The notes: generated by a model from the letters alone, not told the origin. Shown: positions 20,117 to 45,426, counted from the first letter of the stretch. The stretch is DNA of 55,238 bases from Ruditapes philippinarum (GCF_026571515.1 NW_026853223.1:1-55238); one strand, 5' to 3'. A program made the numbers and translations.

Positions 20117-22155
20117 GATATGTTTAAGTCAAAACAATCCTTTGAAATACGGAAAAATACCAACTTGGTCACTATTGTATTATATATTTATTTGATATAT
20201 GGTGAAATGACTTTTTGATTCTCCTGCTGTTTTTATACGGCTGAAAATTATCTAAAAGTCTGAGATATCGTAATTTACTATTCACCAACTTCTAAATTAA
20301 CATATCCCCGCAACAAAATTCACCTGTGTCTATTAACCCATTACCAGATAAACACGCTTTTTTACGCCTTTTACTACCCCCCCCCTTTTTTTGTTGTCTC
20401 AAATGGTGAAAAAATGCCTTATTCATGCCCCAAACACTTGTTTTTGTTTGAGAAATGTTGTTTAAAAAAGTGAACACTTTTTCGGCGCCGCCCCATATCC
20501 AAAAGATACATCAAGGGGTTGCCAGAAGTGGGATGTGCCCACTTCTGTTTAGGGGTTTGAAGGGGGCGGCAGCCCCCTCATCGCCAAGAAAACTCTGGTC
20601 TTGTGAGGGGCTAAAATGATTCCAGATCGATCTTAAGGTAACGTGTAATCAACGAAAAAGCCTTTGACTCTATCTCAATCCATTAAGAAGTTGCAGCACT
20701 TTTGATAGAAAAAAATATAACGCAAAAAGCGATTTTGGTATTTTTTAGATGTCCCCTCGTTGCCATGGTAACAGGAAAATTAAGATAGAGCATATTGTTA
20801 CAATGGCAATGGTCCAGTCAACATTTGTGCCAAGTTTAATTAGTATTGAATCAGTTTTTATAATTTTACAGCAATTTGAACTTGTTACGGGAGACTTTTC
20901 AATGGAAACAGCCATTTTTTCACAAAATGCTCATGCGGTAATGGGCTAATGAAAAACAAAATGAAAAAATTCTACATAACAACAATTTCTCTTCAAAATT
21001 ATATGTTAGACCATGTTTTAACATGGAAGATCGCGATTTTGGGTCATTTCAGGTATTGTCATCATTTTCTGTTAAAGTATATCATTAGTTTGGTCCTGAG
21101 GAGACTCTTTTAGGTACGCTTGTAAATAATGTAGAACTGAGTTTATAAAACCAAAAGTTCAAAGGCAATGTAAGTCCGAAAAGTATGGTTTAAAGAAGTA
21201 GATGTCGATTGAAAACGTCAAATGAACTTTATTCAGTTATTGGCACAGTGTATTCTTTATATTTCTTTAGCCTATTTTCATTAATCGGTTTGAGTTATCT
21301 TCTTGTTAGAAAAATAATCTTAAAATGGGTAAGTGTAGCTGATAATTAAAAGAAATCACTTAAATGTCACCTGTAGTGTATTTATAATATACAATTACTG
21401 TTATTTTTGAATTAAATTCAATAAAAACAACATGCACATCTGGTTTTCATTAATGTGCATTAATTGTAGAATTGACAGTAGTGTTATCAAGGAGGGTGCA
21501 AAAATGCATTATCTTTATAAACAAAATGTCTAAACTTAAAAAATCACATGACATTTGAATACGTATGATATGGACATGTATGATTATGATGAAAATATTG
21601 TGATACAGGTTTTACGAAAAGCCGATTGTGATAGAAAGTTACATGTATATTTACTATTGATGTTTTGTTAAAAAATGTAAATTTGATAAAGTTAATTGCA
21701 CACACATATTGGAAAAGTGAGAGATGTATCGTACTAGTAAAATGGATAAACTCATTACCAATTGTTGCTTATCTTTAATTTCACCAAATGTGCCCAGGTC
21801 ATGATACATTGCAGAATTGTCAGTTTCATTGGTGACAGAATCAATTGTTACACGATAAAATACTTTTAACATGAAAACGTTCAGCGTCCCTAGTACGAAG
21901 AAGGCATCTCGAACAGCGTCGCCTATTGCTGGCAGTAACAACCCTTTTTTAGTTTGTGGACAGGTATTACTTTGGAATATTTCTTGACAGTTTTCTGGAA
22001 CCACCCAGCAAGAAAATAGCCGAATAGAAAGAACTAAATTGCCACAAGCACAACAATAATGTCGTGTTCAAGGATCGGAAATATTACCCCACTTATTGAA
22101 TGTTCTGGTCGACTTTTTACAGCCTCCACCCGGCGCAAACAACGCTGATATGGCG

Positions 22156-22298
22156 ATAAAATAGAGAAAATAAGAATCCCTAAAGAAAGGCCAACACGGC
22201 AAAATTGAAAATGTTGCAGGCTCGGTTTGATTGAGCTTGTTCATGGACGGTACTGCCAAGTGCAAACTACCGTCCACGCCCCCTAGCACCGGCTTAAG
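22156..22298 (-). repeat. dispersed repeat / transposon end (inverted copy at 8650-8743)
   Basis: About 95 bp shared with 8650-8743; extends to a GC-rich end next to TTAA at ~22294. Confidence 0.75.
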
Positions 22299-24063
22299 CA
22301 GAATTCAATATTTAACATGAACTGGTACAATTTTGAATTTTGGCACACCCGCAGATGTGTATATATGGCGGTTATCATAGAACTTTCAATAAGTGCCATT
22401 TCATGAAAAGCGGCATATGGTCCCCAAGTAAAAAATGCGTGTGCCCTAAACGAGAAAACAATGGGCAGAACTAAACAAAATGCAATTTTGAAAGGGGATC
22501 AGATGTTATAAGACTTCAATTTTTGGTGCTAAACCTTCTACCCAGAAATCAACAAAAACATTCAAAAACAACAACAGTAACAACAACAACAAAAAAGAAA
22601 GAAAAAGAAACAACATTATTTCCTATAAACAGATTTAATCTAACCGAGTATGCGATTTTCAAAAATATTTTTGTAATTACTGTCCGGAAATTTCGGAGAC
22701 GATTTTGGAATGCTTGCTATATGTTCGAAGGTGACCTTTAACATAACATTGAATGCAATGAAAAACTAGAGGAATATATTATATTTCAAGCATACCAATA
22801 AATCAAATTATTTTTCATTATAAACTTAGTAAATGTCATTCTAACAAATTAAAAGCTTAGCTATTATGAAATTACATAAATGACGAAAAGAACATTTCTT
22901 CTATCCTCAATAATTAAAAGATGTTTGTTAAGTAAAGTTATATAAGTAAGCATCAATTGTTTGTTTTCATTTCTATGAAAATATTGAACGTAGGAAAGAA
23001 ATTTTCCCCGAATGAAAAAGTTTTATAAAAGGCAATTGTGAAATTTTAAACAAATCTGGAAATATTTTGTTCGCTTGGATTCATATGGTTTCTTAGTTAT
23101 TAAATGGTCGTCAGATATTAATTAATAAAAAGAGAATATATAATTTGTTTCTATTCTATTTGGATGTCTTTAAGTATCTTATTTCTTTTAATTAATGTTT
23201 TGAATACAAATATAGTGTCAACATTTGACTTTATAACATTTTATTGGCAAAATTCATTAGATTATTTTCTATATTAACATTGTCTGAAACGAAATATAAT
23301 GATCTAATTACAGACATAAATATTATGAAAAAAGGGTATACGGATATATACGTTAAAGGAATAATCCTTTCAATTTCCTGCCTATATAACAGGACCAAAA
23401 GTGCATTGTACTATTTTTCTTGAAAAAAAAAGCAAAATACATCCGGCAAAAAATTGAAGCATAGTACATCTGTACATTTGATGCCAGTTAAAACAATCCA
23501 TGACCCCAAACATCAAACAGTTTATGAACAACAGTTAAGTAAGTTCTTCAAGAGAACATGCTTCAACATTCCCCCTATAGTTATTTTTGATTTGTAGCCA
23601 ACAGACCAACAGTGCTCCAGTATAATGGTTTTCTTTGTATATTCTTATTGTGATTTACTTGACACAGAATAGCTGAATTACAATGGAAAATGTTTTTGCC
23701 TATATCATTAAAGACATAGAAATCTGTCAAATGCGACGAGTATCTATCATATAGAATTGCGTCAGTTTTAGTTTCCCTACAGAATTATGTACCTCTAGTC
23801 GAATTACCTTTATTCAGGAAAGCATACTGTTTTGGTTTCTTAAATTCTCATACTCTTACAGGGCATTTCATGGCATAGAGGTTTAATTTGTTTACGTTCT
23901 GAGTTCTGTCTCAAGATTTTTCATTGGTCACTGTCCAATATGTGCTGGTTTAAGAGCAGTTAACTCCTTGAGAACTAAGTTTGAGGTGAGAAAATTCCAT
24001 GACTTGTTACATGATGAAGACTCAATTGCTGCATACCCGGTATAAACCCTTGGAACATTTCAT

Positions 24064-25172
24064 TCAGCGGATGCTTAAACATATTTTAACAATCCATTTA
24101 TTTCCATGAAGAACCGGACAGTTACAGTGTTCGTTACTTATATATTCTGAACCATCTCTAAACATGTTTTCATAAAGCAAAGCACTCCCTTTTTCTAATC
24201 TTACAGTGAGTCCTAATTTCTGAAAAATTTCGAACCCTCCGTCATCTACATTTGTTAATTGAAAAACAGCCGAAAAAATGCATTCTCTTTCAAAATAATT
24301 TACTTGTTGATCAGAAGAATCATTAATTCCAAACCCTCCAATCCCGTAATTAATCGCTCGAGCTCTGAAACTGATTAAGTCTTTGGTTCTTGAAAGCGCT
24401 AATATTTTTTGTTCAATTAATTTATATGACGTTACATGTGATAAATCAATATCTATAAAAGCCACAGCTTTTCCGTCTTCTACGTAAATCTTTTTTGTTA
24501 CATAAGAAGATGATTGTTCCTTGACAATCCTACGAATTGAATCTAGAGTTTTATCAGCTCTTACAATATGATGAAGAATAGCTAGACGTGGGCGATCTGA
24601 AATAATTTCTACCTTAACTGGATTAATAATCAACGCAGCTTGGTTATTATGCACTAGTTTACAATGGAGGTTCCTTTTCCGTGTTTTTATAACGGGTGAT
24701 TTCAATATTGCTTCCGTACAGAGATACAGAACATTTGAATTCACACCTTCTTGCGAATGGACCGCCAGCTTCATGTGTTTACAATCATGCACGGAGAAAG
24801 TCCGAATGCAAGAATTTAATGCAGATGATATTTTCTTGGCGTAAGTATTATTTTTACTATTCAATATGTTATAGATATGAATACTTTCCCGTGAGCAAAG
24901 ACATTTCTTTGTAACTAATGTTTTTGACATAAATTCAAGTTTATCAATATGATTTTCTTGGTCTATTTTAGCATATAAACCACTGTTGATATTTGCTAAG
25001 AATGTCAATGCGTGTTTAAAAGCACTTAGTCCGCTTTCTGAATCTGGTTTAATTGTTTGCACGATGTCAAGAATTTCATCAACAGTTAGATGCCTGGAAA
25101 CCTTGCCATTGATTTCACCGCGAAATATATCATTCCATTTTAGATTGTAGGCTGTTTGAATCCTGTTGATGC
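24064..25172 (-). CDS. prolyl 4-hydroxylase alpha-subunit-like, exon 2 (divergent 2OG-Fe(II) domain)
   Basis: INRIQTAYNL, LIINPVKVEIISDRP, NYGIGG, LTNVDDGGFEIFQKLG..V..EKGSA, EHCNCPVLHGNKW parallel P4HA motifs; phase-1 acceptor aatttag|GC at 25172. Confidence 0.9.
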
Positions 25173-25666
25173 CTAAATTAAGTAAGGACATGCTAGAAAA
25201 AAGTTATACATGACTATATTTTATAGGTTAGATAATGCACGTCTATTAAAAGATGCATAATGCATTATTTTATTTTGTTACACCTCGCATGACACTTGCA
25301 AAAGCAAAGCACTGCATGGATGGTGATTAATAAAAATATTATAGGCTATAAATATAAAAATCTAATTTAAAAAGTTGTGTTAAACCTTCAGGTGTGAATT
25401 TTTAAAATCGTAATATTGCGGCTTCACCTTTCAAATTTCTGTTGTTTTTTTTGAAATTGATGAAATTGCATTAATTCAAATTGGTACAAGTGCTTTGATA
25501 AGCTGAATTGTCACCATTATTAATCATGGTGACAAAGACAATAAATACGCCATAAACTTTAAGTGCGTCTTTTTCGATTTAAGCGAGACAGACATGTACC
25601 ATTCAATAAGAAGTATATGCCGCAATGATTAAAATGTCACAAACATTAAAAAAAACAGTTACATAC

Positions 25667-26129
25667 CCAGTGCTGCATTATGTAAATCCTTTGTTTTTGG
25701 CAGAACCACCATGCGTTTCTGAATCATCTTTTCTAGAAACGATGAAGTGTTATATTTTCCCTGTATAAGAATCTGTTTAGAGACGTTGTAATATTTCATC
25801 AAATGTTTCTGCATTCTGTAAACATGCAATTGATTTTGAAAAAGTTCGTTTCTATTTTGCTGCACATAGCCTTGTGTCTCGTGAATATCTATGTCTCTGT
25901 CACTCTGAAATATATCTACCATTTCTGCATGTTTGACAACTTCCTTCAAACAATTTACTCTAAATGTCTCTTCTTGAATAAATTGCTGTATAGCATTATC
26001 ATGTATTTTTGTATCAGTGCTCTTAATATAAGACAACAAGTTACCTATATTTTCAACAGATGCGGCAATATGCTGCTGTGTATATCCTCTGATCCTGATC
26101 AAAAATAGGAGCACTCCCCAAAACATCAT
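25667..26129 (-). CDS. prolyl 4-hydroxylase alpha-subunit-like, exon 1 (signal peptide and P4Ha N-terminal domain); joined protein ~523 aa
   Basis: MMFWGVLLFLI leader; NQLHVYRMQKHL (cf. NPxNAYxLxKRL); LPKTKDLHNAALG|INRIQTAY (cf. FPxxEDLxGAAxALxRLQDTY); donor CTGG|GTATGT. Confidence 0.88.
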
Positions 26130-28418: not shown

Positions 28419-29035
28419 TTATAATTTTGTGCAGTTTTCCTCTAATCCAAGTAAACCGAACTCTGAGTTTATTTCGCTGTCAAAATCATCTTCGGGTATT
28501 GAACCCAACCCACCAGAAAACCCGCTATCAGCGGTGCATCCATTTATTGCAATCTTGCAAGCTTCTGGTGGGGATGGAGAAACTACTTTTGTCAGGTCAG
28601 AGATTAAAGATCTTATTTCGCTCAAAGACTTTTTCAAATCATTGAATTCTTGCCGGTGCATTTGTTCCATATTTTTAATAAGAGCTCTTTGACATTTTAG
28701 TTCTTTTTCGATATCAAAATCTTGATTTCTAAGATGATGTACCATGTTTGTTAGATCAGTGAAATTACGCTTTAATTCATTAATGTCCTTTTGTTGAGCA
28801 ATGGTCAATTCCTTTAAAGCACAGCTGTGCAAATCGGCCTTTCCCTCAATTACTTTTATATGGTGTCCAAGTTCATTTATAACTCTGGTAGTTTTACACA
28901 TATCATATGTGCTGCTTACTCTGTTATGAATTGTTTCGTAATGCATTTCATGACGATATCTACTGTTGCTATGGTGATTAGCCTCGTGGTGAAACTTCTT
29001 GTGGTTGCATTTAACTTTCTTCAGATCAGTCTCGT
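28419..29035 (-). CDS. tandem-CARD protein, last exon (coiled coil and acidic tail)
   Basis: Phase-1 acceptor ctttcttttaaag|AC is in frame with ORF 28946-28419; heptad-like LKELTIAQQKDINELKRNFTDLTNMVHHL...FNDLKKSLSEIRSLISDL. Confidence 0.8.
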
Positions 29036-29193
29036 CTTTAAAAGAAAGATATACATATAGCTGAAATACATCTGTTTATTATGAAATATTACGACAGCTT
29101 GTGTTTATTTCGAGATTTCAATACTTTGAAAATAAGACATTATCTGCATAAAGATTAATGGAAAGGAAATAATAAAACGTCGGTAGTCCATAC

Positions 29194-29544
29194 CTGTTAC
29201 GGGTGACATCTGACGATCCTCTAAAAACGACAATAACTCAGCAACATCTCCCAGGCCACACTTTTTCAGTATGTCTGGTAACCGTTGCACCCACTCATGA
29301 GATTTTGTTGGTATAATGTTAAATATTTTATGAGCAGCCGCTAAAAGACCGTTGTTCCTTTTCTCTGATTCAACAATCTCTTTGTCTGCTTCATTCAATA
29401 GTTCTGCCTCAAACAGCAAATCTAAAAATTCATCAACATGGATGTTGTAGACAAGCTGTCTTGACATAAGAGCAAGTAATTTTCTTTTATCTTCTGTATC
29501 ATTTTCTGTCTCTGAGTTAAGCAGCTGGACGATCGCACTATAAC
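29194..29544 (-). CDS. tandem-CARD protein, CARD2 exon
   Basis: KRKLLALMSRQLVYNIHVDEFLDLLFEAELLNEADKEIVESEKRNNGLLAAAHKIF...HEWVQRLPDILKKCG is a CARD-fold pattern of RIG-I/MDA5 type; acceptor ctacag|GT, donor ACAG|GTATGG. Confidence 0.85.
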
Positions 29545-30056
29545 CTGTAGACATAGAAAAAACTTAGATAAAATAACACATTAGTTTCAATGTCCTCTTT
29601 TCAATATTATCTGAAAAAGGAAGGTTCAATTTTTCTTACGTAATCAAGTAAAGTTTTGAATATATGTTACATTGAAGGTCAAGGTGCATCATAAGACACT
29701 CGTATATGCAGATTTTAAGCACCATTTGTTTATTTATACTTATGGTAGAAATTACTATAGTTACTATAGCGATGGGCACTTTCTTCAAGGTGAGTGCTAC
29801 CGGACACTACGAGTATTTATTAATCACTTTATGTCACAAGTAATTATCTATTTCAATTAATGAACATACGGCGTTTGAGCACGACTGACAGAAACAAAAT
29901 TGTGATGAACTAAATTTGTCACAGGATTTCGAAATTTGATATTGTATGATTAACACTTCCAGAGAACCAAGGTCTGTTTAAGCAGCAATTAAATGCTATA
30001 ATTGTGTATCATCAGATATTTGTATATCTAATTAAGTATCTTTTTATGATACCGAC

Positions 30057-30807
30057 CATTATTATCCAAAGCTTCTATAAAGTTCTGCCATTTCCCTTGT
30101 TCAGGTGAGTGTCTGATATGTCCAAGTAACATGTCTACTGGTCGGAGACCATCAACCGGACACTTTTGGAACATTTGCCAGTACAGAGTTCATAATTTTT
30201 AACCTAGAGACCAAAAAATTTGACACAGTTCAGCTAGGTTCTTCTCCTAACTAACAAACTAGTTTGTTTATTTCTGATTGTAATGACACTTTCATCTGAG
30301 GCTCGACAAGGAGGGTATCAAAATTACCTAAATTGTCAACACTACAGTACCATGTGTCCGGACAGCTATGTGCATGATATGATTTAATTCAGATAAAAGC
30401 TTGGGTGTTTTGATTTTTGATTTGTAACATGATATACAGTATGTCAGCAACAAATGCTGAACTTTTGGATATTCTATTATTCACTCTGCGAATGATTATA
30501 GCTGGTAATTGAGGTCAGGCATTGCTTTCTTTACCCCCGAATTTCAACGTCAACATTCTTGAAATATAAATTAAAATATTACCATTTACGGAGGTTGAAA
30601 TACATTTATTTACTTAATTTTAAAAGAAACATGCACTTATTGTTGATAAAAAGTGACTGACAACCACCGAACAAAGAAAATACTAAATTAAGCATTTTCG
30701 GGGCCGTCCGGATTTAGTGGTTGTCCGGTTTTTGTGGTCCCCAACCAGTACAGCTGCTTGCCGTGATTCTTTTGATCTTCTCTCTATTTCTTCTTTGTAA
30801 ACATCGT
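30057..30807 (-). CDS. tandem-CARD protein, CARD1 second exon, interrupted by a TIR element (30138-30748)
   Basis: Removing the insert and one TA gives DDVYKEEIERRSKESRQAAV-DMLLGHIRHSPEQGKWQNFIEALDNNG in one frame; acceptor ttccctag|AC, donor AATG|GTCGGT, both phase 1. Confidence 0.82.
30138..30748. mobile_element. 611-bp non-autonomous TIR DNA transposon with TA target duplication (Tc1/mariner-type MITE)
   Basis: TA at 30136-37 and 30749-50; left end CTGGTCGGAGACCATCAACCGGACA, right end reverse complement CTGGTTGGGGACCACAAAAACCGGACA. Confidence 0.88.
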
Positions 30808-31207
30808 CTAGGGAAAATGATAAAATATTTGTTTTAGACATAAAAAAATTAAGAAACCATTTCGCCAGAAGCTGCCAAATATTAGCGAAAATGAGAAGCG
30901 CTTTTGTCAATTTTAGCAACTACTCTCCAACTTCTTATTTTAAATGTGTAATAAAAAGTCTTATCAAAATTAAATTCAAAACAAGTATGAATTATAAAAG
31001 ATATATATTAACAGTTAAATCAGACGAAAATCATTCAAATGAAATAATAATTCTCAGACGTTCCATTCACAGAGGAATGCTCATCAGTTAAAGCTATTGA
31101 CACGTTCATATACCATACGATTATTAGTATAAGATATATACTCATTTATACTAGATCTCGTAAATGATTCCCTATAAATCAGAATAATTCGTATAGAAAT
31201 TCTTTAC

Positions 31208-31430
31208 CAATACAGTGAATATCTTTTAAGAGGTCCTCAACGCGCAGATCCATTTGTAATCTTTTCTTGTAAACGTCTACCATGAACTCAATTTGTTGAG
31301 GTCGACACACGCTGCAATTTACACGCATGTAATCCTTAGAACTAGTGTGTCCACTCGCAGAAGTGTCTGCTGTAAACGCCGAATCTTTGGATGAATTTGT
31401 TCGTTCACTCATCCTTGGGAATGACCCCCT
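31208..31430 (-). CDS. tandem-CARD protein, linker and CARD1 first exon
   Basis: RGSFPRMSERT...QQIEFMVDVYKKRLQMDLRVEDLLKDIHCI; acceptor ttattag|AGG (phase 0), donor ATTG|GTAAAG (phase 1). Confidence 0.8.
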
Positions 31431-32245
31431 CTAATAACACAATAAAAGAAATAAATTTAAAAGTGATATAGTCCATAATGGAAGGTCTTTAATATCATGA
31501 CTTATAATGTTGTTTGCATAAAATATCATAGGCGACAACAAACCAAGAAAGAATTGAATATGGATATTGATGGCGAGGATGAGATACATGATTCGATAAG
31601 ACAAAAACATACAGCAGTTTAAAATGTAGAACATGTTAACATGTGTATGTATTATTCATATGAATAATCATACTAAATCACTATGGACATTTTCAACAAA
31701 TATGTTTCATAAGAATATCTCCAAATGATACATTCCTTGAGTTTTAATCAATATTTGAAATACTTTTGGAAAATATATCAATTGCATACGAATCAACTAT
31801 GTTTAAATGATCTAACATATTATATTAATTTCAATATCAATTCAACGTGTGGAATCATAGATAAATTGTATAAAAACTGTTGTATAATAACTGTTGTAAA
31901 TTGTATAATAACTGACAATCTTTGACAAAAGGCATACACGAATAGGGGTGTATGGGAAAGAAACCAGAGGACCGGGGAGGGGTGGGGTTGATCGTGGTGG
32001 CAAACTAGGGTAAAGAGGATAGTTTGGGACAAAAATAAGAAAGGACACAACAAATTATATCACAATAGAATGTAGTAATAAACAATACATACATCTTATG
32101 AAACTTATAGGGGCACCGCCTTGGAACGATAGCCGCAAAGTCTTTTCTGGGGTGTTTAAACATGTTAATGGTGCACAAAATCTCACTAACATGATCCTGT
32201 TAAACGGGTAGTGCAAATAGCATGAGAGGTCATGTGTTAACTTAC

Positions 32246-32308
32246 CCGGAAGTATTCAGGATTATCCCATCCTATTGTATGCTCGTCAGCAAGTGCGACT
32301 GCATGTGG
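32246..32308 (-). CDS. tandem-CARD protein, 63-nt exon PHAVALADEHTIGWDNPEYFR
   Basis: tattttag|CCA...CGG|gtaagt; phase 0-0, open frame. Confidence 0.72.
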
Positions 32309-32914
32309 CTAAAATATAAATAACACATGTAGAGATAATTATACAAATTCTATGTCTAAAATTTAATATGCACTAGTATATTAATACTTATTCGGTTAAT
32401 TTATTCATGATTCATTGTCAATTCTAGTATTTATGTCGTGCTTTATATATGTCAGCGTTTGTATTCGTGTGTATCATTTTATCAGCTAAGTATCAGTAGG
32501 CGGTTACTCTTTTTTAACTAGCATCAGGGGCTAAATGTCTGCTCATTAAAAATTTTATATGAAAAAATAATGTACAAAACTAGTTATTTTCAAACGATAT
32601 AAAGAAAAATAAGAGTTCACTTTTAAACAGTGATTTCATTCTCATTCTAAATCAAAGTCAAATAAAAAAACCTTAAAAGCCGACAAACATGGCCAAATTG
32701 AAACTTGTAATCTCCGTTTGATGAAGTGGTAGTTGGTGCAACATACAGACAGTTCTCTCGACACCAGCTTGACCTGAAGTCTTCATTTTTAATTAAGAAT
32801 CATCCAAATGTGAGATCAAGGTGAGATACAGCGGTGATCAAAGAACTTCCAATGTGATAATTCTTTCCATTGTATACATTTACTCAGTTAAAACAATTAC
32901 GAAACTATAGTTAC

Positions 32915-32977
32915 CTTTCGTACAGATGGCTTTGGATGAATTGTAGCATACACATCAACATCATCGCTTAAAGACAT
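32915..32977 (-). CDS. tandem-CARD protein, 63-nt exon MSLSDDVDVYATIHPKPSVRK
   Basis: tttctacag|ATG...AAG|gtaact; phase 0-0. Confidence 0.72.
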
Positions 32978-33805
32978 CTGTAGAAATAAAAGATATTTAA
33001 AATAGCATTTCTCTTTTACAAAAAAAAAAGAATATGAACGTGATGAATAATAAGCTGTTTGACAGCCTGCCTAGGAACAATGGGATGGCAGAACTGTGTT
33101 TTGGTAAATTAAATGCGGTTGACTGCCGTGTTTCTGCTTGGATGCTCTTACGCATGAAAGTTGATGGAACAATGTTTAAAAAATGTTATTTTTGGAATAT
33201 TGTATACGTTTCGGTAAGAAAAAATCATTTCAGTATAGTTTTGTTACCATCAGCACATTTATTGAAACAAGACATATTAGAATTAATTTTTTAATATCAA
33301 ATTTCTCCAGTGTTGTGCTCAGCTCTCAAAAGAATAATCATTATGCAATCATTTTCACAGTAGTATCTGAAGGTTATAATACATGTTGTTTTAACAGGAG
33401 AAAAAAAGAATATGGTTATAAAAATGCACTGATAATAAATATCCACTTATTAGACCAATCCTGCACTTTGGTTCTGTCCGCTGGTGGTCTTAATAGAGGG
33501 TTTTTACTGCACTATCAAATACTAATGTTGCTTTCCAAATTTGCCATTTTGTCATAATTATTATAAAGGATAATTTCTATTTTTATTAATTTATGTGCAA
33601 ATGGCCTAGAAAATAATCTGCATTTGACCTCTTAAAAAGTTTTCACTTATATCTGGTTTATATTTTTTTCATTACCAGGCATACTCAATCATTTCATTAA
33701 TGTACCAATAGTTATCAAATAGCAGGATGAGCTTAAACGATGAAAACAAATAAAGCACCCTCATCCCAAGTACAACGGTTTTGATTGCAATTTGTGAAGT
33801 TATGT

Positions 33806-34000
33806 TGGCGGCGTGGCCGAGTTATTAATGCGATTAGTAATCTAAGGATTGTTCAAATGCTGTCAGGGGCAAGCCATTGTTTCCTTGACCGAGAAACTTT
33901 ACATTCATTGCTTACCACTGGCTGGTTCCAGGAACGGATTCGAGAGTGTAATAATAAGCTGAAAGCTTCCAAGACAATCGAACCAAAATAAATTTGCATA
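33806..34000 (+). mobile_element. degraded tRNA-derived SINE (CORE-like)
   Basis: GGCGGCGTGGCCGAG head; TTTCCTTGACCGAGAAACTTTAC...TTGCTTACCACTGGCTGGTTCCAGGAACGGATTCGAG body resembles CORE-SINEs. Confidence 0.65.
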
Positions 34001-34023
34001 AACTAATTTGTCGTGAAACATAC

Positions 34024-34185
34024 ATTGTCATTGGTCTCAGCTTCTCCGCCATCATTTGCCAATCCTGTGCATGTGCCTTTTATTCCATTTATGTCGGTTC
34101 TAGACATAGACTGTTCGCTTTGATGATGATCTCTTACATTTAGAACTTCCAGTGTTGTTAAATAGTCTGGGTTTTCGTAAGAATT
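34024..34185 (-). CDS. tandem-CARD protein, 162-nt exon NSYENPDYLTT...ETNDN
   Basis: ttgtttatag|AAT...AAT|gtatgt; phase 0-0, 54 open codons. Confidence 0.72.
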
Positions 34186-34690
34186 CTATAAACAAGAGAA
34201 AAGATTATCGTAATTATGTTGCATCACTACCTCCCCTGATCTGTACAGAAATCGAATAATTAAGGGGAGATCACCGCATGGAGATTGGTAAATGATTACG
34301 CTTGAATATTTTATGTATCAGACGAAATTATTGAAGAGAAGATCAAAATCTGACATTATAATGTGAAGAAATAACGAGTTATTTTAAAATGTGTTATAGA
34401 TTAATCGACTTTTATAATATGTGTGAATGAAATGCAACATTAAATTTGTAGAAGTAAATAGACCTTGGTTTAAAATCAGAAATGTGTACATAAATTGATG
34501 AACAAGGGTACAGTAGAGATATATGTTGCTGCTCATTATAAGAGTATAAAAGGCTCGAGAAGTTGATGTCGCCCTTTCACAAAATCTGATTTCATTCCAT
34601 AAAAGGCGCCGCGCTTCGGCGCGGACGCCAATTATGTAAATCCGCCATGAAAATCAGGTGATCCATAAACAATGTATTTATCTAGTTTAC

Positions 34691-34747
34691 CTTTAATGTT
34701 GCCGACTGACCGCTTTGAAGTCTACGAGGAAAGGTCGGGCATGGTGA
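34691..34747 (-). CDS. tandem-CARD protein, 57-nt exon SPCPTFPRRLQSGQSATLK
   Basis: atttcag|TCA...AAG|gtaaac; phase 0-0. Confidence 0.68.
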
Positions 34748-35221
34748 CTGAAATATCATGTATGAAACAAAAGTGAAAAAGTTAGTGTATTAAGGTTTTT
34801 GTATGCACAGTGTATGCATTTAAAATTAAATAATTTTAATGTGTTAATATTTCACTAGTAAATGCTTTGGTGAGACAGTCTGGTGCTGTTGATTTCACAT
34901 ATTCTTTAAACCTGGGACATAATGAAATATTTTTTTACGCTCAGCGTATCTCTTTCACAGTTTTACCAGTTTTACGAGAATTTGATTTCTCTCAGAAATG
35001 GTATGACCTTATAAAATGCCAAAATTAGTACATTGGTAAAAATCATATAAATTCTGACTAGATTTATGTTGAAATCGTGATATGGTAAATGTTGCAGTGA
35101 AATGATTACTCTTTTAAACTGTATATACCTGAACATTATCATCATTTGAAGAAAATAAGACCAGCGTTTGAGTCTTCATTTTTAGAAAATAACAAAGAAA
35201 ACTGAATATACATCGACTTAC

Positions 35222-35371
35222 AGGGGGATTCTCTTTAATATCAGGAATTTCATTAGGAATCTCCTCTATGTCATGGGTAACATTTCTAACACCTTGTAAC
35301 GATGCAGGATCCCAACCGCTTATGACACTGACACCATAATCTTGACATTGCTGGTAGCGACTGGCCCTCAG
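35222..35371 (-). CDS. tandem-CARD protein, 150-nt exon LRASRYQQ...KENPP
   Basis: aatttcag|CTG...CCT|gtaagt; 50 open codons. Confidence 0.65.
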
Positions 35372-36270
35372 CTGAAATTTATAACGGTATTCAAAATTAA
35401 TTCTCCTCTCTTTTATTACACTTTATTTCCCCTTTCCATAGATTTTAAATTGAATAGAAAATTATCTTTACACAGTCATTACATTTTATACAATAATTCA
35501 AACATAGTAAATATAGGTCATGTTTAAACATAGGTTAAGCACATGAATTTATGACATGCATCGTAATATATACACACATTTACAAATAGTCCTAACTATC
35601 ATTTTCTACACCCATTTAGAAGAAATTTTTGCATAGTTGTATATTGAAGTAATCTGTAAAATTATATTTTCTTAGAATTCTAAAAATATCAGGTATAAAT
35701 TCTTTCTGAATAATGGAATTTCCATTTATAGCAAATCTAAGATCGAAAATTTGTTTTGCCAGTAGATGTATTTGCGTTGTTTATAGTTTTTCGAGTAAAC
35801 GTAATTTTCTTTTGACAATATTTGACCACACTGAAGGCCAACCAAGCATACTTAATGCGATGTCCGTTCTTGTTCGTTGACTTGTTTGGCACAGAATCTT
35901 AAAAACATTTCTACAATACTTAAATCATTCAATGCCATGCTATTCCCTATTTCAAAGCCATTAAGTGTAGTAGGGAAAACTATTTTTCAGTCATATTTGC
36001 AAGAATCATTGAATTTATTTAAGAGATTTCATTTCTTAAGTCCAATAGTGAAAAGGCAACCTCGGACTTCTGAGCACAAGTTTCGATTAAATTGGTACAT
36101 TGTTGTAATGGACCAACTAGTTTTAGATTCTTTGACGCTATTTGAATCATTAGAGGAATGTGTGTATGTTCCTGTCAAAAACTTGCTGTTTTCTTTATTT
36201 TCATGAATAGGAATACACAAGAACTATTTGATAAATTACTAGCTTAAACATTTACAAAACCTCCAACATA

Positions 36271-36328
36271 CCTGTCTACTGCTAGAAATGTTACCTTTCT
36301 TCTTCTGTTGTGAAAAATGATTTCCCAT
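36271..36328 (-). CDS. putative first coding exon of the tandem-CARD protein (MGNHFSQQKKKG...)
   Basis: Acceptor ttgtag then AAAATGG start; donors AAAG|GTAACA (after 36295) or CAG|GTATGT (after 36271). Probable next exon at ~36171-36061; the exact path to 35371 is ambiguous. Confidence 0.5.
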
Positions 36329-36415: not shown

Positions 36416-36925
36416 TTCTGTGTGTCAGCGTGTGTTAGAAGATCCCGGGTACTAGTGTGTATTCTGTATATCAGCGTGTGATGGAAGATCCTGGGTACTA
36501 GTGTGTATTTTGTGGGTCAGTGTGTTATTGAAGATCCCGGTAATTGTGTGTATTCTGTGTGTCAGCATGTGACGGAGAACCCAGAAACTTGTCTGTATTC
36601 TGTGTGTCAGCGTGTGATGGAAGATCCCGGGTATAAGAATGTATTTTGTGTGTTAGCGTGACGGAAGATCCCGAGTACTAGTGTTTTCTGTGTGTCAGTG
36701 TGTTATTGAAGATCCCGGTACTTGTGTGTTTTCTGTGTATCAGCGTGTAACGGAAGATCCCAGGAATTTGTGTGTATCTGTGTGTCAGTGTGTGATTGAA
36801 GATCCCGGATACTTGTGTGTATTCTTTGTGTCGGTGTGTGACGGAAGATCACGGGTTCTTGTTTGTATTCTATGTGCAGCGTGTTACTGAAGATCGCGGG
36901 TACTTGTTTGTATTCGATGCATGTC
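36416..36925. repeat. minisatellite, ~46-bp unit, ~11 copies
   Basis: Unit ~TTCTGTGTGTCAGCGTGTGACGGAAGATCCCGGGTACTTGTGTGTA, head-to-tail, no spacers. Confidence 0.93.
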
Positions 36926-40265: not shown

Positions 40266-40372
40266 TAATTATTATAATAATAATAATGATACAGTAATAA
40301 TAATGATGATGATGATAGTGATGATGAAAATAATAATAATAATAATAATAATAAATAATAATAAAAATAATA
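40266..40372. repeat. (AAT)n/(GAT)n microsatellite
   Basis: Directly visible. Confidence 0.9.
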
Positions 40373-41728
40373 TCAAGAAATCTATGCGCGACCTGGGCAA
40401 AAATCTAAAAAAAAACACGTGTCACTGCTATTAAAATGTTTTAGATATTTCAATGCTTATATTTATAGTTTAACTGCGTATATGAAATGAGCTGATGTTA
40501 CGTTAATTTACTGGTTCGTAAGAATGAATAGTGAGTGTATTCTATTGGTCTATTAGTTACTAGAGTTTTAACTTCCCTGTTGATTGTCATTAGTCGAAAA
40601 TTTTATTCACTCTATTCAAAGTTAACAAATTTGAAATCTTCTTTTCACATTTTAATTGAAATTTCATATCATACCTTTTATTATGTCATTGATAAAATGC
40701 CTGAACAGTTTTGGTGAAATTCTATTTCCCATTCATTATATATTTTAGAGCTTAATATGTTCAAAATTAGGTAAAGGAAGAATGGTTAGGTTAATTTCTA
40801 AGAAAACTTTAAATGATTAAGGAGTGTTGACAGTTGAAACGGTGCAAAAAGTCTTTCGGACTATAACAATTTCAAAAAAGTACCGAATACCCGAAAATAA
40901 CAGGTGTTAAATATAATCTTAAACTTGTTCAAACGTACTTAGGTGTTTATCTCATATCAGTTTTTTTGTATTATTTTATTAATATTTTGCTTGTTAAGTA
41001 ATCGAGTGGTAGACGTTAACATTAATTAATGTATTTAGCACAAGAATAAATGGTTATTTATGTAATCATAATTATATAGTGTATCCTGCACTGCAACAAT
41101 TATGAAATCAAGTATGCATTAGCGCGCATGCGTGTGTGCGTGTATGTGTGTGTGTGCTATTAAATTGTAATTTTCACACTTAGTATCTATATATTGTGTT
41201 ACTATGTACAAAACAGGAACAACAAAAACAAAAAAAAGATAAAAAAAATAAATGTCCGTCCTGCTGAAAGCAAATTAAGTTTCAGAAATGAATTCGATTT
41301 TTCCTGTAAAGAAAAGACAAAACTTTATTTTGTATTTTTTTAATATGGATAAAGAGCTCAATAAATGATTATCACGTGTACAAAGCATCGTTGAATGTGA
41401 ATAAGTTTGTCTTTAAATGTAGCAAAAAGTTTTGACTTCATACAAATTACTGAGTCACATTATAAGTGGCCGAAAAGCTAGATGGTACTGAGTATCGTTT
41501 CGGAAACTGTAACAGAATATCAACAATACGATAATAAAAATTTTTTTTATAACTTAATGAGCATGTAAGCTCTCCTTTGAATTAGGTTGTGGTAAATCCG
41601 AATGGTACAAAAATAGTTTGAGGAAAAGGAAAGTTTTAAAACTTGTCCATTCGAGCAAAATAAATCATTTGTCTAAACTTTTTTTAAATGTTTTAAAGTT
41701 TTGTGAAATTTTCATGTTTTCTGTAGAA

Positions 41729-42111
41729 NNNNNNNNNNNNNNNNNNNNNNNNNNNNNNNNNNNNNNNNNNNNNNNNNNNNNNNNNNNNNNNNNNNNNNNN
41801 NNNNNNNNNNNNNNNNNNNNNNNNNNNNNNNNNNNNNNNNNNNNNNNNNNNNNNNNNNNNNNNNNNNNNNNNNNNNNNNNNNNNNNNNNNNNNNNNNNNN
41901 NNNNNNNNNNNNNNNNNNNNNNNNNNNNNNNNNNNNNNNNNNNNNNNNNNNNNNNNNNNNNNNNNNNNNNNNNNNNNNNNNNNNNNNNNNNNNNNNNNNN
42001 NNNNNNNNNNNNNNNNNNNNNNNNNNNNNNNNNNNNNNNNNNNNNNNNNNNNNNNNNNNNNNNNNNNNNNNNNNNNNNNNNNNNNNNNNNNNNNNNNNNN
42101 NNNNNNNNNNN
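41729..42111. other. assembly gap (383 N)
   Basis: Run of N. Confidence 1.
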
Positions 42112-44965
42112 TGAAAAATTTGAAAATGTTTTTGAATGTATGATATTGTGAAATAACCAAAAGGAAGCAATTTGCGCATGATCAATGGCACTTACAACAC
42201 ACGTAAATTACCAAAAAATTGGTCAAAAAGTAACACAATAGAAATATAGTTGTTAATACTGACAAATCAGTCATTAACCGCACATAACATGTAAAATATT
42301 ACTTGAATCTTGAATCATTTTGCTTTTCCTAAAATCGTAGTACATATTTTTCAAGTTTGATTTTAATGAAATATTTTGACTCATCTGGTGGTATGCAGCT
42401 TTAAGAATAATAACAACATAAAAATCACCACGTATATGTCCCCGGCCCAATTTAACAAGAAAAATTGGACCAAATAGAACGAATATGATATTGGAGGAGT
42501 ATTGGAGAAGTATTGACATTTGTACATGCTATATATTGTATAACTCCTAATTCTAGAGAAGTTTTTTCATGTTGCATAAGTATAGAAGATGTTTTGATGT
42601 AATCAAGTGGAGATGCACATGAATAACTTTAATAATTAGACCAAAATAGTTATAAATTTTTGAAGACTTTTTGGAAATTTTAATATGATATTCGCCTATA
42701 ATTCCACAGACGTGTGTTTCTTCAATTTAATAAATGTTAAATCAATTAACACTATAAAGAAAATCATATAATTAATGAATAATCTATGTAAAAGGGCCAA
42801 TGTGCTATTATATTTGTTTTCTAAAAGCTTTCTCGATCTTTCGTCCTATTAGTTTCCAAATTGATACTTATTGACCATATTGCTCTGCTATCTTTTGTTT
42901 CTTTTGCGTTATGTTATAGTGTTTTGTATGGAGGTAAAAATACTGTTTTAATTACATTTTTCTACCTTTAACACAACTATTTGAATACAGCCCTATTTCC
43001 TTAAGGTGCACAAGCATCTCATATATATGTTCTAAATCTATTGTATCATAACATTGTCAAAGGCATGTTTGCCCTTTCTACGGAAAGAGAAAAAAATGTT
43101 TAAGGCATAATGTGCCGTTAACAATGGGACAAGGTGACATTGTGTGTTCCAAGTACATTTATACACTCACTCTTGTAAATTGCATCGCTTAGAATAAAAA
43201 TACAGCTGCGAACTTTAGATTATCTGTAACAACTTTATCTTATACATGTATATACATACTCATTTAGATCATTTTCGTATACGCAAATATTGAAAACACA
43301 ATAAATTCATAAAAACAAACATTTTAAAGTAACATTTATTTACCTTATTATCAATATTACGACGCCTACGTCTATACCAGAATTAAGTTTCCCAAAGACC
43401 AAAATGTGCCCCCTGACGTTTATGCACGCACCATTTTGCGAAAATTGTGTGGATATAAGACGGGAATTTCCAACATTTTATGGTTGACTGAACGTCATCT
43501 ATCCGATTGGTTGACTACCTGTCCAATTATTATAATAATACGATTTATAAACTCTTTAAACATCTAAAGTAGTTTCACATTTAATACTGAATGGTTTATA
43601 CTATATACCCCTGCTCATCTCTACCAATAACTGGGTAAGATAACTGTGTATGATGGTTCGAGTTTAGTTTCTTTATGATATAGCTGTTCATCAAGCTCAA
43701 GCATAGCTGCTGCTTCTGCACGTGTATTAAATAAAAATGCCGGTATTTTGTGGGATGGGTCAGGCACTACAAGAATACAGTCGGCGTGACATAAAACTTA
43801 CTTATTTCATACAATGAACGTGAACTAGAAATTATGTAAAGAATTATATTTTATTTAATACGCAATATATGATGTCAACCCGGTACGGAATTACACAAAA
43901 TCCGTTGAAGTCTAGAAAATAGATCTTCAATTTTTTTAAGTGTCCCATTTTAAGTTGGTCATATTTTAATTGTATCAATTGCATATGTTCCGCTTGTCTG
44001 TTTATAATATGATGACTTTAAAAGTTGTTTTGTGTGCACAAATTATTTCTCATTTCTGACCGAAAGGACACACCAGGGGCAGGAGTTTGGTTCAATGCTC
44101 CTTTTTCAAGTTTGTCGTTTTTGACGTTCTTTAGAACCCGCGACTTGTCTTACATGGGGGTGTAAAAAAGGTTTTTCTAGCAGTGGTGTAAACAGTAGAT
44201 AATGCTGTCTGATATGCAAGAACAGAACAAATTTTACATTACATATACGATCAGTACAAAAAGGATGAGAATGGGAACAACTGAACGCTTTATTTAAGTA
44301 TTTCCCCCAAACAGGACTTTTGAAAGTGGACAAGGAGGAAAATTTCTGAACAAAGACGATCGCTAAAATGTTTTATTGCGGGCTTCATTTCACTTGGATA
44401 GTTTTGATGTTTAAATTTTAAAACCGTAAATTTTTCATCAGAAATTGTAGAATCAAGAGTTTACCTTCGAATATGGCTGATTTCTTCTGGAATATAAATG
44501 ACAATACCTTTATCTTAAACTTAAATCTAGTATAAACTTAATGCCTTATTAACTTAATATATCTATCATATACACGCTATCTTTCTTTTGTATATATTAT
44601 ACTTACTATATCAAAAGGATTTCCATAAATATAAAGTAAATGCAATGCAATATGACTAAGAGTTCTTTAAGTGTATAATATCACACGAGTTGCAATGCTT
44701 TCAAGCTAACACGTAAAAGGAACTGGAAGTAATGCACTAAGAATCAAAGATGCAAACATCTAAATTCAATCCCAGCGCATTCTTAATGCGTTCTTAGTAA
44801 TGAAGTTTGAAGAAAATATATGGTCCAGTATTATATAAGTAACAACTTTTTATACACGACCATATAGCACATCAAACGCTTTATAACAAATATCAAATAC
44901 TTTTTATGATTAAAATACATGTAATCCTAAATTTATATCATCTTGAATTTCTGTATTTTGCTTTT

Positions 44966-44979: not shown

Positions 44980-45426
44980 TGACAAAATTGTAAATGTATT
45001 GATTGTGTGAAACGAGGTAACTGTATGTATAGGTTATAATAACAAAGTATGTAGTTCTTCTTACATTTGTATTGAATATTTAAATATGTAAATATAACTA
45101 GTACACTGTTACAATTTAATGTGTGTCATTGTTCGAGTGTCACTATCTACTTACCTGGCGTTAAAAGACAATAGGTGCTTTCAATTGAAGAAATCATTTA
45201 ACCTCGTTATACACATTAAAGTTTTAACTCTAAACATTCTTTATTCGATGTTCAACTTGCAATAGTATACCGTTGAATAGTTTTTTGATTGACAATAAGC
45301 GCTAACTTATTTTTTTAGTTTATTCACATGCTTTGTAAAAGTTATTCCTTTTCATTGATGTTCAATTGCGTTTTAAAGCTGTATTGGTAACACTGATTTT
45401 GCCGAAAATATAGCTACGTGTTGAAA

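Follow-up and report, generated by a model that had tools for sequence, protein, structure and literature searches.

Within a window of 55,238 nucleotides from the clam Ruditapes philippinarum (NW_026853223.1; the window is the whole stretch of DNA that was analysed), a first-pass annotation had proposed a hidden minus-strand gene whose product would join two RIG-I/MDA5-type CARDs to a coiled coil and carry no helicase. The locus raises the question whether such a gene exists, whether its domains are what they seem, and what a protein of this build might do.

The locus is a transcribed ten-exon gene

The minus-strand locus 36328-28419 is a genuine gene of this venerid clam, with ten exons, and it is transcribed. 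All exons of the first-pass annotation were borne out by AG/GT sites and phases. The chain starts one exon further upstream, with an ATG at 36328 (exon 36328-36272, donor GTATGT, phase 0), which accounts for the end coordinate given in that annotation and for its word 'membrane-anchored'. The features of the locus are as follows.

36272-36328, minus strand: E0, first coding exon, 19 codons, MGNHFSQQKKKG..., N-myristoylation consensus and basic patch (sequence, RNA ends)
35222-35371, minus strand: E1, 150 nt, phase 0-0, N-terminal region with two Tyr (AG/GT sites, RNA joint)
34691-34747, minus strand: E2, 57-nt micro-exon, phase 0-0 (splice sites, joints in X1 and X2)
34024-34185, minus strand: E3, 162 nt, phase 0-0, SYENPDYLTT with one YxN and one NPxY pattern (sites, X1/X2 joints)
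32915-32977, minus strand: E4, 63-nt micro-exon, phase 0-0, DVYATI with a YxxI pattern (sites, X1/X2 joints)
32246-32308, minus strand: E5, 63-nt micro-exon, phase 0-0, DNPEYF with an NPxY pattern (sites, RNA joints)
31208-31430, minus strand: E6, 223 nt, Ser/Thr-rich last part of the N-terminal region, then first CARD1 helices (tblastn, joints)
30749-30807, minus strand: E7a, first piece of the CARD1 exon, ahead of the MITE (P0004 alignment, joint 30807/31208)
30136-30748, no strand assigned: MITE of 611 bp together with one TA of the duplication (inverted repeats, RNA skip)
30057-30135, minus strand: E7b, remainder of the CARD1 exon, GKWQNFIEAL (P0004 alignment, joint 29544/30057)
29194-29544, minus strand: E8, 351 nt, entire CARD2 (Pfam CARD_2 PF16739, E 1.2e-14)
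28419-29035, minus strand: E9, last exon with linker, helix, tail and stop codon (heptad test, homology)

Acceptors (AG) and donors (GT) are canonical and phases consistent at all exons of the chain. Spliced and freed of the MITE, it gives a predicted product of 626 aa; the RNA-supported CDS stops at 28419, and the exons follow the Mercenaria RefSeq protein in collinear order.

Spliced RNA contigs of runs X1 and X2, which come from two separate studies, reproduce eight of the nine predicted junctions exactly and join the small upstream exons to the CARD exons as anticipated. Exon depth in these contigs was 100-680, and depth was near zero across most introns. Both runs held the joints 29544/30057, 30807/31208, 32308/32915, 32977/34024, 34185/34691 and 34747/35222, while 31430/32246 was seen in X1 only. 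In both runs the contigs have a loose end at about 35371 whose sequence matches the end of E0 (the 36272 exon) in reverse complement, which confirms the joint E0/E1 as well. The comparison with RNA covered the junctions from E0/E1 to E7/E8; the ninth, E8/E9 (29194/29035), is predicted from collinear homology to Mercenaria and ENA proteins.

A young MITE interrupts the reference allele

The insert suspected in the exon at 30807-30057 is real. It is a 611-bp MITE (30138-30748) with a TA duplication and terminal inverted repeats of about 28 nt, which interrupts CARD1 and puts a stop codon in frame in the reference haplotype. Taking out the MITE restores the frame, and the alignment with the Mercenaria protein runs through the break, which falls at residue 288 on both sides. 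The genome holds at least 1,501 candidate copies, each flanked by TA...TA and with unrelated sequences around it. Since the best of them are 99% identical, the copy in CARD1 is very young.

RNA contigs of X1 and X2 skip exactly 613 nt at this place, as do a single raw RNA read from X21 and a single contig from the DNA-like run X15. Because the MITE is missing from both the RNA contigs and the DNA-like run, it is a polymorphic insertion that the reference haplotype carries. The reference allele, truncated inside CARD1, is therefore probably null; functional transcripts derive from MITE-free alleles.

The centre of the protein is an RLR-type tandem CARD

E8 was recognised by Pfam as CARD_2 (PF16739, E 1.2e-14) and as CARD (PF00619, E 9e-5), and is 56% identical to its Mercenaria counterpart. 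Its AlphaFold2 model consists of helices throughout (mean pLDDT 72), and the leading Foldseek matches of this CARD2 model were almost all CARDs; taken singly, it resembles Apaf-1/caspase-9 CARDs about as well as those of RLRs and MAVS. Since CARD1 is split over three pieces in the window, it was checked through orthologues only. E6 aligned with residues 194-268 of the relative P0004 (tblastn, 53% identity, E 1e-18), E7a with residues 266-288, up to position 30749, and E7b with residues 288-312 (68% identity). The GKWQNFIEAL at the end of CARD1, encoded by E7b, is the most conserved stretch of the family, with W and AL invariant in the family alignment. Two CARD_2 stretches were found by Pfam in nearly all full-length relatives tested.

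The family profile matched the MDA5 2CARD (7dni_A) at E 2.1e-19 and the RIG-I 2CARD at E 4e-13 to 1e-10, each time in a single stretch spanning both CARDs, compared with E 0.01 for the MAVS CARD and 0.05-0.1 for Apaf-1 and CARD11. In the orthologue AlphaFold2 model the CARDs lie at about residues 235-420 (2CARD pLDDT about 90). Foldseek placed this 2CARD on 7dni, 6bzh, 4p4h and 4nqk with a target TM of 0.78-0.82 and an rmsd of 2.3-2.8 Å over 177-196 columns, and only RLR 2CARDs gave two-domain structural matches. Judged by sequence and model, the protein has a central RLR-type tandem CARD (2CARD) that matches the MDA5/RIG-I 2CARD as one rigid unit. The earlier assignment of two consecutive CARDs of this type thus stands (profile E 2e-19 to the MDA5 2CARD; Foldseek TM about 0.8, rmsd about 2.7 Å, about 195 columns).

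The claimed lack of a helicase and of a TM segment also held, both on the contig and in the orthologues (Pfam, PF11648 search, Kyte-Doolittle). Pfam gave CARD families only, and no helicase, in the exons of the window and in the 10+8 relatives, with the exception of P0057, a true RLR. The genome has at least 18 exons matching the RIG-I C-terminal domain (PF11648), none of them on the contig of the window, and its CARD_2 exons number at least 38. Kyte-Doolittle analysis shows no TM segment, with a highest 19-residue mean of 0.77 among the exons and of no more than 1.31 among the relatives. The next gene downstream is P4HA-like.

The 2CARD is flanked by a putative lipid anchor and a coiled coil

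The protein starts with MGNHFSQ, which fits the PROSITE N-myristoylation pattern and is followed by an adjacent basic (Lys) patch. The pattern recurs in 12 of 16 aligned family representatives, where MGxxx[ST] is conserved, and 10 of 15 residues encoded by E0 are identical in the Mercenaria N-terminus. The protein is thus probably lipid-anchored. 'Membrane-anchored' survives in this form, as a prediction from the consensus, which is conserved across the family.

The region of about 210 aa from E0 to the start of E6 is disordered in the orthologue model and bears the Tyr motifs. Two of the five to six motifs alone are kept in Mercenaria, VYA[ST]I (DVYATI in E4, GVYASI in Mercenaria) and NPEYF (DNPEYF in E5, ENPEYF in Mercenaria), and distant paralogues retain a single Tyr column in the family alignment. 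E1 shows a weak collinear match to residues 14-62 of P0004. Identity to Mercenaria is 53-68% in the CARD exons, which we read as probable purifying conservation, while the Tyr-motif exons E1-E5 retain short motifs only.

E9 encodes a basic His-rich linker and about 105 aa of heptad-periodic helix, then PSPPEAC, an ADSGFSGG motif and an acidic tail ending in -CTKL, in line with the coiled coil and acidic tail noted before. The heptad test gave 32 windows, against 2.1 in shuffles, a value reached by 1 of 1,000 shuffles. In the orthologue model, residues 478-587 form a single helix (pLDDT >90), which a disordered linker of about 45 aa separates from CARD2. E9 is 42-55% identical to P0004 and P0002. 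A DS[GA]-hydrophobic motif recurs in the tails of the family, with 12 of 18 carrying it (0.2 expected from shuffles).

The gene belongs to a bivalve family

A search of other bivalves recovered the same architecture, as a multigene family, in Mercenaria, Mya, Dreissena, Mactra and unionid mussels. Examples are XP_045172599.2 (LOC123534423) of Mercenaria mercenaria, XP_052243722.1 of Dreissena polymorpha and XP_052798229.1 of Mya arenaria. The relatives share the same order end to end: MGN..., a Tyr-bearing region (disordered in the model of P0004), two CARD_2 domains, a coiled coil, a DSG-hydrophobic tail and an [ST]x[FL] C-terminus. They are 22-56% identical, and their N-terminal regions differ in length and motif content. 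The clam gene has MG with the N-myristoylation pattern, two CARD_2 domains with GKWQxF..AL, and a long helix followed by the DS[GA]-hydrophobic tail; it is a member of this uncharacterised, bivalve-specific (LOC123534423-like) family.

The gene is therefore neither a one-off nor a hidden system, since its relatives already exist as 'uncharacterized protein' or 'CARD domain-containing' models. Our literature searches found no paper on the MG-2CARD-coiled-coil family, and the protein databases searched held no model of the clam gene from the same species. Overall, the first-pass interpretation is partly supported: its architectural reading holds, and the link that it proposed from tyrosine-kinase signalling to CARD filaments stays hypothetical, two of the Tyr motifs being kept in Mercenaria.

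Possible function

We infer, at about even chances, that the clam protein signals as an adaptor of the RLR/MAVS type, a CARD-CARD protein tethered to a membrane and acting as a positive scaffold. N-myristoylation, together with the adjacent Lys patch, would keep it on the cytosolic side of the membrane. Once multimerised through the coiled coil, the rigid 2CARD units could build a short helical CARD assembly like that of the RIG-I/MDA5 2CARDs. Such an assembly may engage CARD partners (RLR 2CARDs, MAVS-like or other single-CARD proteins), and the N-terminal Tyr motifs and the acidic DS[GA]-hydrophobic tail could serve as phospho-dependent docking or turnover sites. Filaments of the MAVS CARD are known to be nucleated by tetrameric RLR 2CARDs (structures 4p4h and 7dni). 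A CARD-CARD RIG-I/MAVS axis is present in a bivalve (PMC5557890), and it is on these two precedents that the mechanistic analogy is built.

A 2CARD without an activating sensor domain could equally be an inhibitor. The protein would then bind RLR 2CARDs or cap MAVS-type assemblies, sequester them at the membrane and damp antiviral signalling, as a decoy or negative regulator. CARD-only proteins such as ICEBERG and COP damp caspase-1. The RLR signalling module is indeed present here without any sensor domain, the large RLR repertoire (at least 18 RIG-I C-terminal-domain exons and 38 CARD_2 exons) might need buffering, and the reference individual tolerates a null, MITE-bearing allele. However, simple decoys are short CARD-only proteins, whereas this family conserves a lipid-anchor signal, a Tyr-bearing region, a long coiled coil and the DS[GA]-hydrophobic motif, all needless for a pure competitor, and it has expanded and diversified as is typical of receptors and adaptors. 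We consider such a regulator possible, though clearly the less probable reading.

The positive-scaffold reading can be taken one tentative step further, to a proposal that we hold to be on balance unlikely. Heteroconch bivalves may have detached the RLR 2CARD 'seed' from the RNA-sensing helicase and placed it on a lipid-anchored, coiled-coil scaffold with Tyr motifs, giving an RNA-independent, membrane-receptor-driven entry to MAVS-type CARD filament signalling. If true, this would be a new class of innate-immune adaptor, and the family expansion would represent many such input channels.

It is quite improbable that the CARDs instead bring CARD-caspases, or a partner of the Apaf-1/NLR kind, onto a membrane platform, with apoptosis or pyroptosis-like death as the outcome in place of transcriptional signalling of the RLR/MAVS type. 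The single CARD2 does match Apaf-1/caspase-9 CARDs about equally to those of RLRs and MAVS, and scores with PF00619 (E 9e-5), but the two-domain module is specifically RLR-like (E between 1e-19 and 1e-10, where Apaf-1 and CARD11 reach 0.05-0.1) and its two-domain structural matches come from RLR 2CARDs only. That the gene is decaying or dispensable, a pseudogene in the making whose architecture has no current function, is suggested by the in-frame stop within CARD1 and by the missing same-species protein model, but is highly improbable given that MITE-free alleles are present as DNA and as spliced RNA in two studies, that open frames and splice sites are kept in all exons, that conservation extends to Mercenaria for the CARD and coiled-coil exons and across the family for the motifs, and that the MITE copy is very young.

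Comparison with known systems

CARD9 and CARD10/11/14 (CARMA) resemble the clam protein in having a CARD followed by a long coiled coil. In CARD9/CARMA the coiled coil drives oligomerisation, and these adaptors act downstream of Tyr-phosphorylated (ITAM) receptors. They differ in their single N-terminal PF00619-type CARD, with no 2CARD and no myristoylation signal, and the family profile matches the CARD11 CARD at E of about 0.1; the clam CARDs are tandem and of the CARD_2 type, with a linker of about 45 aa before the helix in the orthologue model.

In TRAM/TICAM2, FRS2 and Src-family N-termini, an MGxxxS/T start and basic residues hold the adaptor at the membrane, and Tyr/Ser motifs provide docking. 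None of these is known to have CARDs, and their likeness to the clam protein is one of anchoring principle only.

With RIG-I and MDA5 the clam protein shares the tandem CARD_2 (PF16739), homologous as one unit and, in the model, with the two CARDs set in the same rigid way. Unlike them, it lacks the DExD/H helicase, the pincer and the RNA-binding domain at the C-terminus, and its 2CARD is central rather than N-terminal, preceded by the myristoylation signal and the region of about 210 aa and followed by the coiled coil and acidic tail.

MAVS has one N-terminal CARD and a C-terminal TM anchor, whereas the clam protein has two central CARDs, no TM segment, a putative N-terminal lipid anchor and a coiled coil, and the match of the family profile to the MAVS CARD is weak (E 0.01). 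Both are nevertheless CARD proteins without enzymatic domains and membrane-associated adaptors (putatively so in the clam), with CARDs of the same Pfam family and long disordered regions bearing short linear motifs. CgMAVS of the Pacific oyster has an added Death domain, and self-association is important in MAVS signalling (PMC5557890).

Gene model and splicing

The CARD gene of Ruditapes philippinarum belongs to an as yet unnamed bivalve family in which the 2CARD module of RLRs occurs in a new, conserved architecture. The minus-strand exon chain claimed in the first-pass annotation proved sound: all listed exons are bounded by AG acceptors and GT donors, and their phases match. The true start of the chain lies one exon upstream, where an exon of 19 codons (MGNHFSQQKKKGNISSSRQ) runs from an ATG at 36328 to a phase-0 donor, GTATGT, at 36272. 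This exon explains the end coordinate and the label 'membrane-anchored' of that annotation. Without the insert in the CARD1 exon, the coding sequence is 1,881 nt long (626 codons and a stop).

Exons of the CARD gene (window positions)
36328-36272, minus strand, E0, start exon
35371-35222, minus strand, E1
34747-34691, minus strand, E2
34185-34024, minus strand, E3
32977-32915, minus strand, E4
32308-32246, minus strand, E5
31430-31208, minus strand, E6
30807-30057, minus strand, E7, CARD1 exon, split by a MITE
29544-29194, minus strand, E8, CARD2
29035-28419, minus strand, E9, last exon

We aligned four runs to window positions 29401-35400. Two of them, X1 and X2, are contig sets from different studies and behave as RNA, because their depth was 100-680 over exons and near zero in most introns. 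The joints 29544/30057, 30807/31208, 32308/32915, 32977/34024, 34185/34691 and 34747/35222 were found exactly in both, and 31430/32246 was present in X1. Both sets also have an overhang at the acceptor near 35371 whose reverse complement matches the end of the 36272 exon. Eight of the nine junctions are confirmed by these RNA contigs, including every joint between the small upstream exons and the CARD exons, the point on which the first-pass annotation had said that its model could fail. The ninth, 29194/29035 between E8 and E9, lies beyond the aligned stretch and is predicted from collinear homology: the Mercenaria mercenaria orthologue (P0004) and an ENA protein (P0002) continue directly from CARD2 into the sequence of E9.

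A minor alternative acceptor of E1, one base off, was seen in X1. Since E1 to E5 are all phase 0-0 with lengths that are multiples of three, the loss of any one by exon skipping would leave the frame intact and could vary the set of tyrosine motifs.

A tandem array with a 45-bp period (about 11 copies, 77% matches; alternative periods 91 and 178 bp) occupies 36416-36915. Its end is only about 90 bp upstream of the ATG, which places it within or beside the promoter or the 5' UTR. At 34545-34632, in the intron between E2 and E3, and at 33801-34000 there are short segments of very high copy number, whose depth in the DNA-like run X15 is of the order of 10^5. The first, a sharp-edged segment of about 86 bp, is abundant in raw RNA reads, which have thousands of loose ends at each of its two edges. 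A tRNA scan and an Rfam scan gave no match for this highly expressed repeat, which is probably a fragment of a SINE or MITE whose transcripts stem from other loci.

A MITE in the CARD1 exon

A 611-bp element at 30138-30748 splits the CARD1 exon; it has a TA duplication, and its terminal inverted repeats measure about 28 nt. At least 1,501 candidate copies occur in the genome, the best of them 99% identical, each flanked by TA and set in unrelated sequence. In the reference haplotype the element puts an in-frame stop 21 codons past the break, and the alignment to P0004 halts at 30749 and restarts at 30138, with residue 288 on both sides. An exact 613-nt skip was found in X1 and X2 RNA contigs, as well as in a single raw RNA read (X21) and one X15 contig. 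The depth of X15 is even, about 83 over introns and exons alike, as expected of DNA, and the skip in its contig means that the MITE-free form is present in DNA. The insertion is polymorphic and young; the observed transcripts derive from intact alleles.

X15 also differs from the reference by a 77-bp deletion and several small intronic insertions (window 29955-30033, 31091-31119), and it has many SNPs in E6 that the RNA contigs share. The reference haplotype of this locus is thus quite diverged from the expressed alleles. The MITE provides a natural presence/absence allele, probably null, which could serve directly for disease-resistance association, and the locus exemplifies how annotation can miss a gene of this kind when it has micro-exons and a young MITE.

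The tandem CARD module

Exons were queried singly in searches and folds, and the full-length architecture was examined on the natural orthologue P0004. E8 by itself was recognised as CARD_2 (Pfam PF16739, E 1.2e-14); its predicted fold is a helical bundle, and nearly all leading structural matches were CARDs. Nearly all full-length relatives had two CARD_2 stretches and nothing more in Pfam, while a helicase and a RIG-I C-terminal domain occurred among them only in P0057, a genuine RLR. Neither domain was found for the clam gene, so the earlier claim that it lacks a helicase stands.

A 16-member family profile matched the MDA5 2CARD (7dni_A) at E 2.1e-19 and RIG-I 2CARDs at E 4e-13 to 1e-10, each as one continuous stretch over both CARDs, and reached only 0.01-0.1 with the CARDs of MAVS, Apaf-1 and CARD11. 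Foldseek superposed the whole P0004 2CARD on those of MDA5 and RIG-I (target TM 0.78-0.82, rmsd 2.3-2.8 A, 177-196 columns), which indicates that the inter-CARD orientation is RLR-like as well. Profile and structure agree with the expectation of two CARD folds nearest to those of RIG-I/MDA5; this applies to the family and P0004, the window's CARD1 being covered through its orthologues only.

A bivalve family

A phmmer search with E8 against 1.84 billion representatives gave 63 matches. In this single-sequence search, all named matches were bivalve, and all heteroconch except one oyster protein of different architecture. They came from Mercenaria, Ruditapes, Mya, Dreissena, Mactra and the unionids Sinanodonta and Potamilus, and were mostly labelled 'uncharacterized' or 'CARD domain-containing'. 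The top full-length match, P0004 (XP_045172599.2, 642 aa), aligns collinearly with the window all the way from its MGN start to its tail. Searches with the family profile and the P0004 2CARD in a database whose word index is too insensitive for the family returned P0004 alone. The sole return for E9 there was a 175-aa ORF on a 1.7-kb metagenome contig, which is clam DNA (97% identical).

No model of the CARD gene from Ruditapes philippinarum surfaced in the protein databases searched, and it is in this limited sense that the gene is 'hidden'. Our literature searches found no paper on the family; in the molluscan literature, including the lophotrochozoan RLR paper, we found no account of helicase-less tandem-CARD or myristoylated CARD proteins. 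The first-pass suggestion of an undescribed system holds for the literature searched, but the family is already in databases as bivalve models.

The CARD gene is single-copy in the assembly. Genome-wide, CARD_2 exons number at least 38 and exons for the RIG-I C-terminal domain at least 18; many of the CARD_2 exons are on contigs that have no RLR C-terminal domain. A paralogue on contig C15390 has an identical CARD1a/CARD1b/CARD2 exon layout. The RefSeq paralogue XP_060587302.1 from the same species matches contig C3784 with 98-100% identity in the best exons. C3784 carries two tandem MG-2CARD paralogues about 20 kb apart (20866-24769 and 40364-42739), one 94-100% identical to XP_060587302.1 in most exons and the other 85-89%. 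The pair arose by recent tandem duplication in this family.

An immune gene cluster around the CARD gene was ruled out, its neighbours being the following.

Neighbours of the CARD gene (window positions)
18293-20116, plus strand, 7TM (7tm_2, GPCR-like) ORF of 607 aa, secretin/adhesion-type (PF00002, E 1e-15)
24064-26129, minus strand, P4HA-like gene, the next one downstream of the CARD gene (ORF 25659-26129 matches P4Ha_N at E 8e-6)
45418-46605, plus strand, NHL-repeat/beta-propeller ORF of 395 aa (weak matches, E 5e-5)

The 7TM ORF looks like one large exon belonging to a GPCR gene. The 375-aa ORF at 24064-25191 of the P4HA-like gene had no Pfam match. An assembly gap spans 41729-42111.

Putative anchor, helix and linear motifs

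AlphaFold2 predicts residues 1-228 of P0004 to be disordered, 234-420 to form a confident 2CARD (pLDDT about 90), 425-470 to be a disordered linker and 478-587 a single 110-residue helix (pLDDT >90), followed by a disordered C-terminal tail. No TM-grade hydrophobic stretch was found in any exon or relative examined. The PROSITE N-myristoylation pattern is present in the window protein and in 12 of 16 family representatives, usually with Lys/Arg next. Heptad periodicity in E9 is strong at residues ~45-152 (32 windows against 2.1 in shuffles, with 1 of 1,000 shuffles reaching 32). A two-copy complex prediction of this helix region scored 0.06 and returned no answer.

The E9 tail has 10 acidic and 2 basic residues. 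A DS[GA]-hydrophobic motif lies close to the C-terminus in 12 of 18 tails (0.2 expected). The closest relatives also terminate in [ST]-x-[LF]-COOH, which has the form of a putative class I PDZ ligand. By-eye inspection of the tail for TRAF-binding and pLxIS motifs gave no convincing match. The tyrosine motifs of the window protein include YENPDY, VYATI and NPEYF, among others; Mercenaria retains VYA[ST]I and NPEYF, and one tyrosine column is conserved more widely. DVYATI was ruled out as an ITIM, since its position -2 is Asp (Gly in Mercenaria) and not I/V/L/S.

Proposed mechanism and comparison with known systems

In RIG-I/MDA5, the 2CARD is known as the module through which an RNA sensor delivers its output. 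MAVS CARD filaments are templated by a short helical assembly of RLR 2CARDs (structures 4p4h, 7dni). In oyster, an RLR-MAVS CARD-CARD axis has been demonstrated, with a MAVS composed of CARD, Death and TM (PMC5557890). In the clam protein this 2CARD unit comes with no sensor; in its place are a predicted lipid-anchor signal, a helix that would multimerise and linear motifs that are conserved. Membrane tethering and oligomerisation would then create a CARD-CARD scaffold that passes on a positive signal, and the motifs may serve as phospho-regulated docking sites. We consider this the most economical reading and would give it an even chance. The protein might instead be a decoy or inhibitor of RLR/MAVS assemblies, which is possible if rather unlikely, while a death adaptor that recruits caspases seems doubtful. 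That the gene is decaying is very improbable.

As a membrane-tethered scaffold, the protein would present the two-domain unit of RLRs standing alone on a putative lipid-anchored, oligomerising support, in a conserved and expanded family. Bivalve RLR repertoires are very large, and to our knowledge bivalves are without interferon-type textbook pathways. The family suggests that they wire CARD-CARD signalling in so far undescribed ways, and its members are concrete, clonable candidates for the adaptors or regulators still missing from molluscan antiviral signalling, in clams and other aquaculture species. The protein is not an RLR, since neither the helicase nor the C-terminal domain of RLRs was found. 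It is not a MAVS, as it has two CARDs and no TM, and it differs from CARD-CC proteins in both the type and the number of its CARDs.
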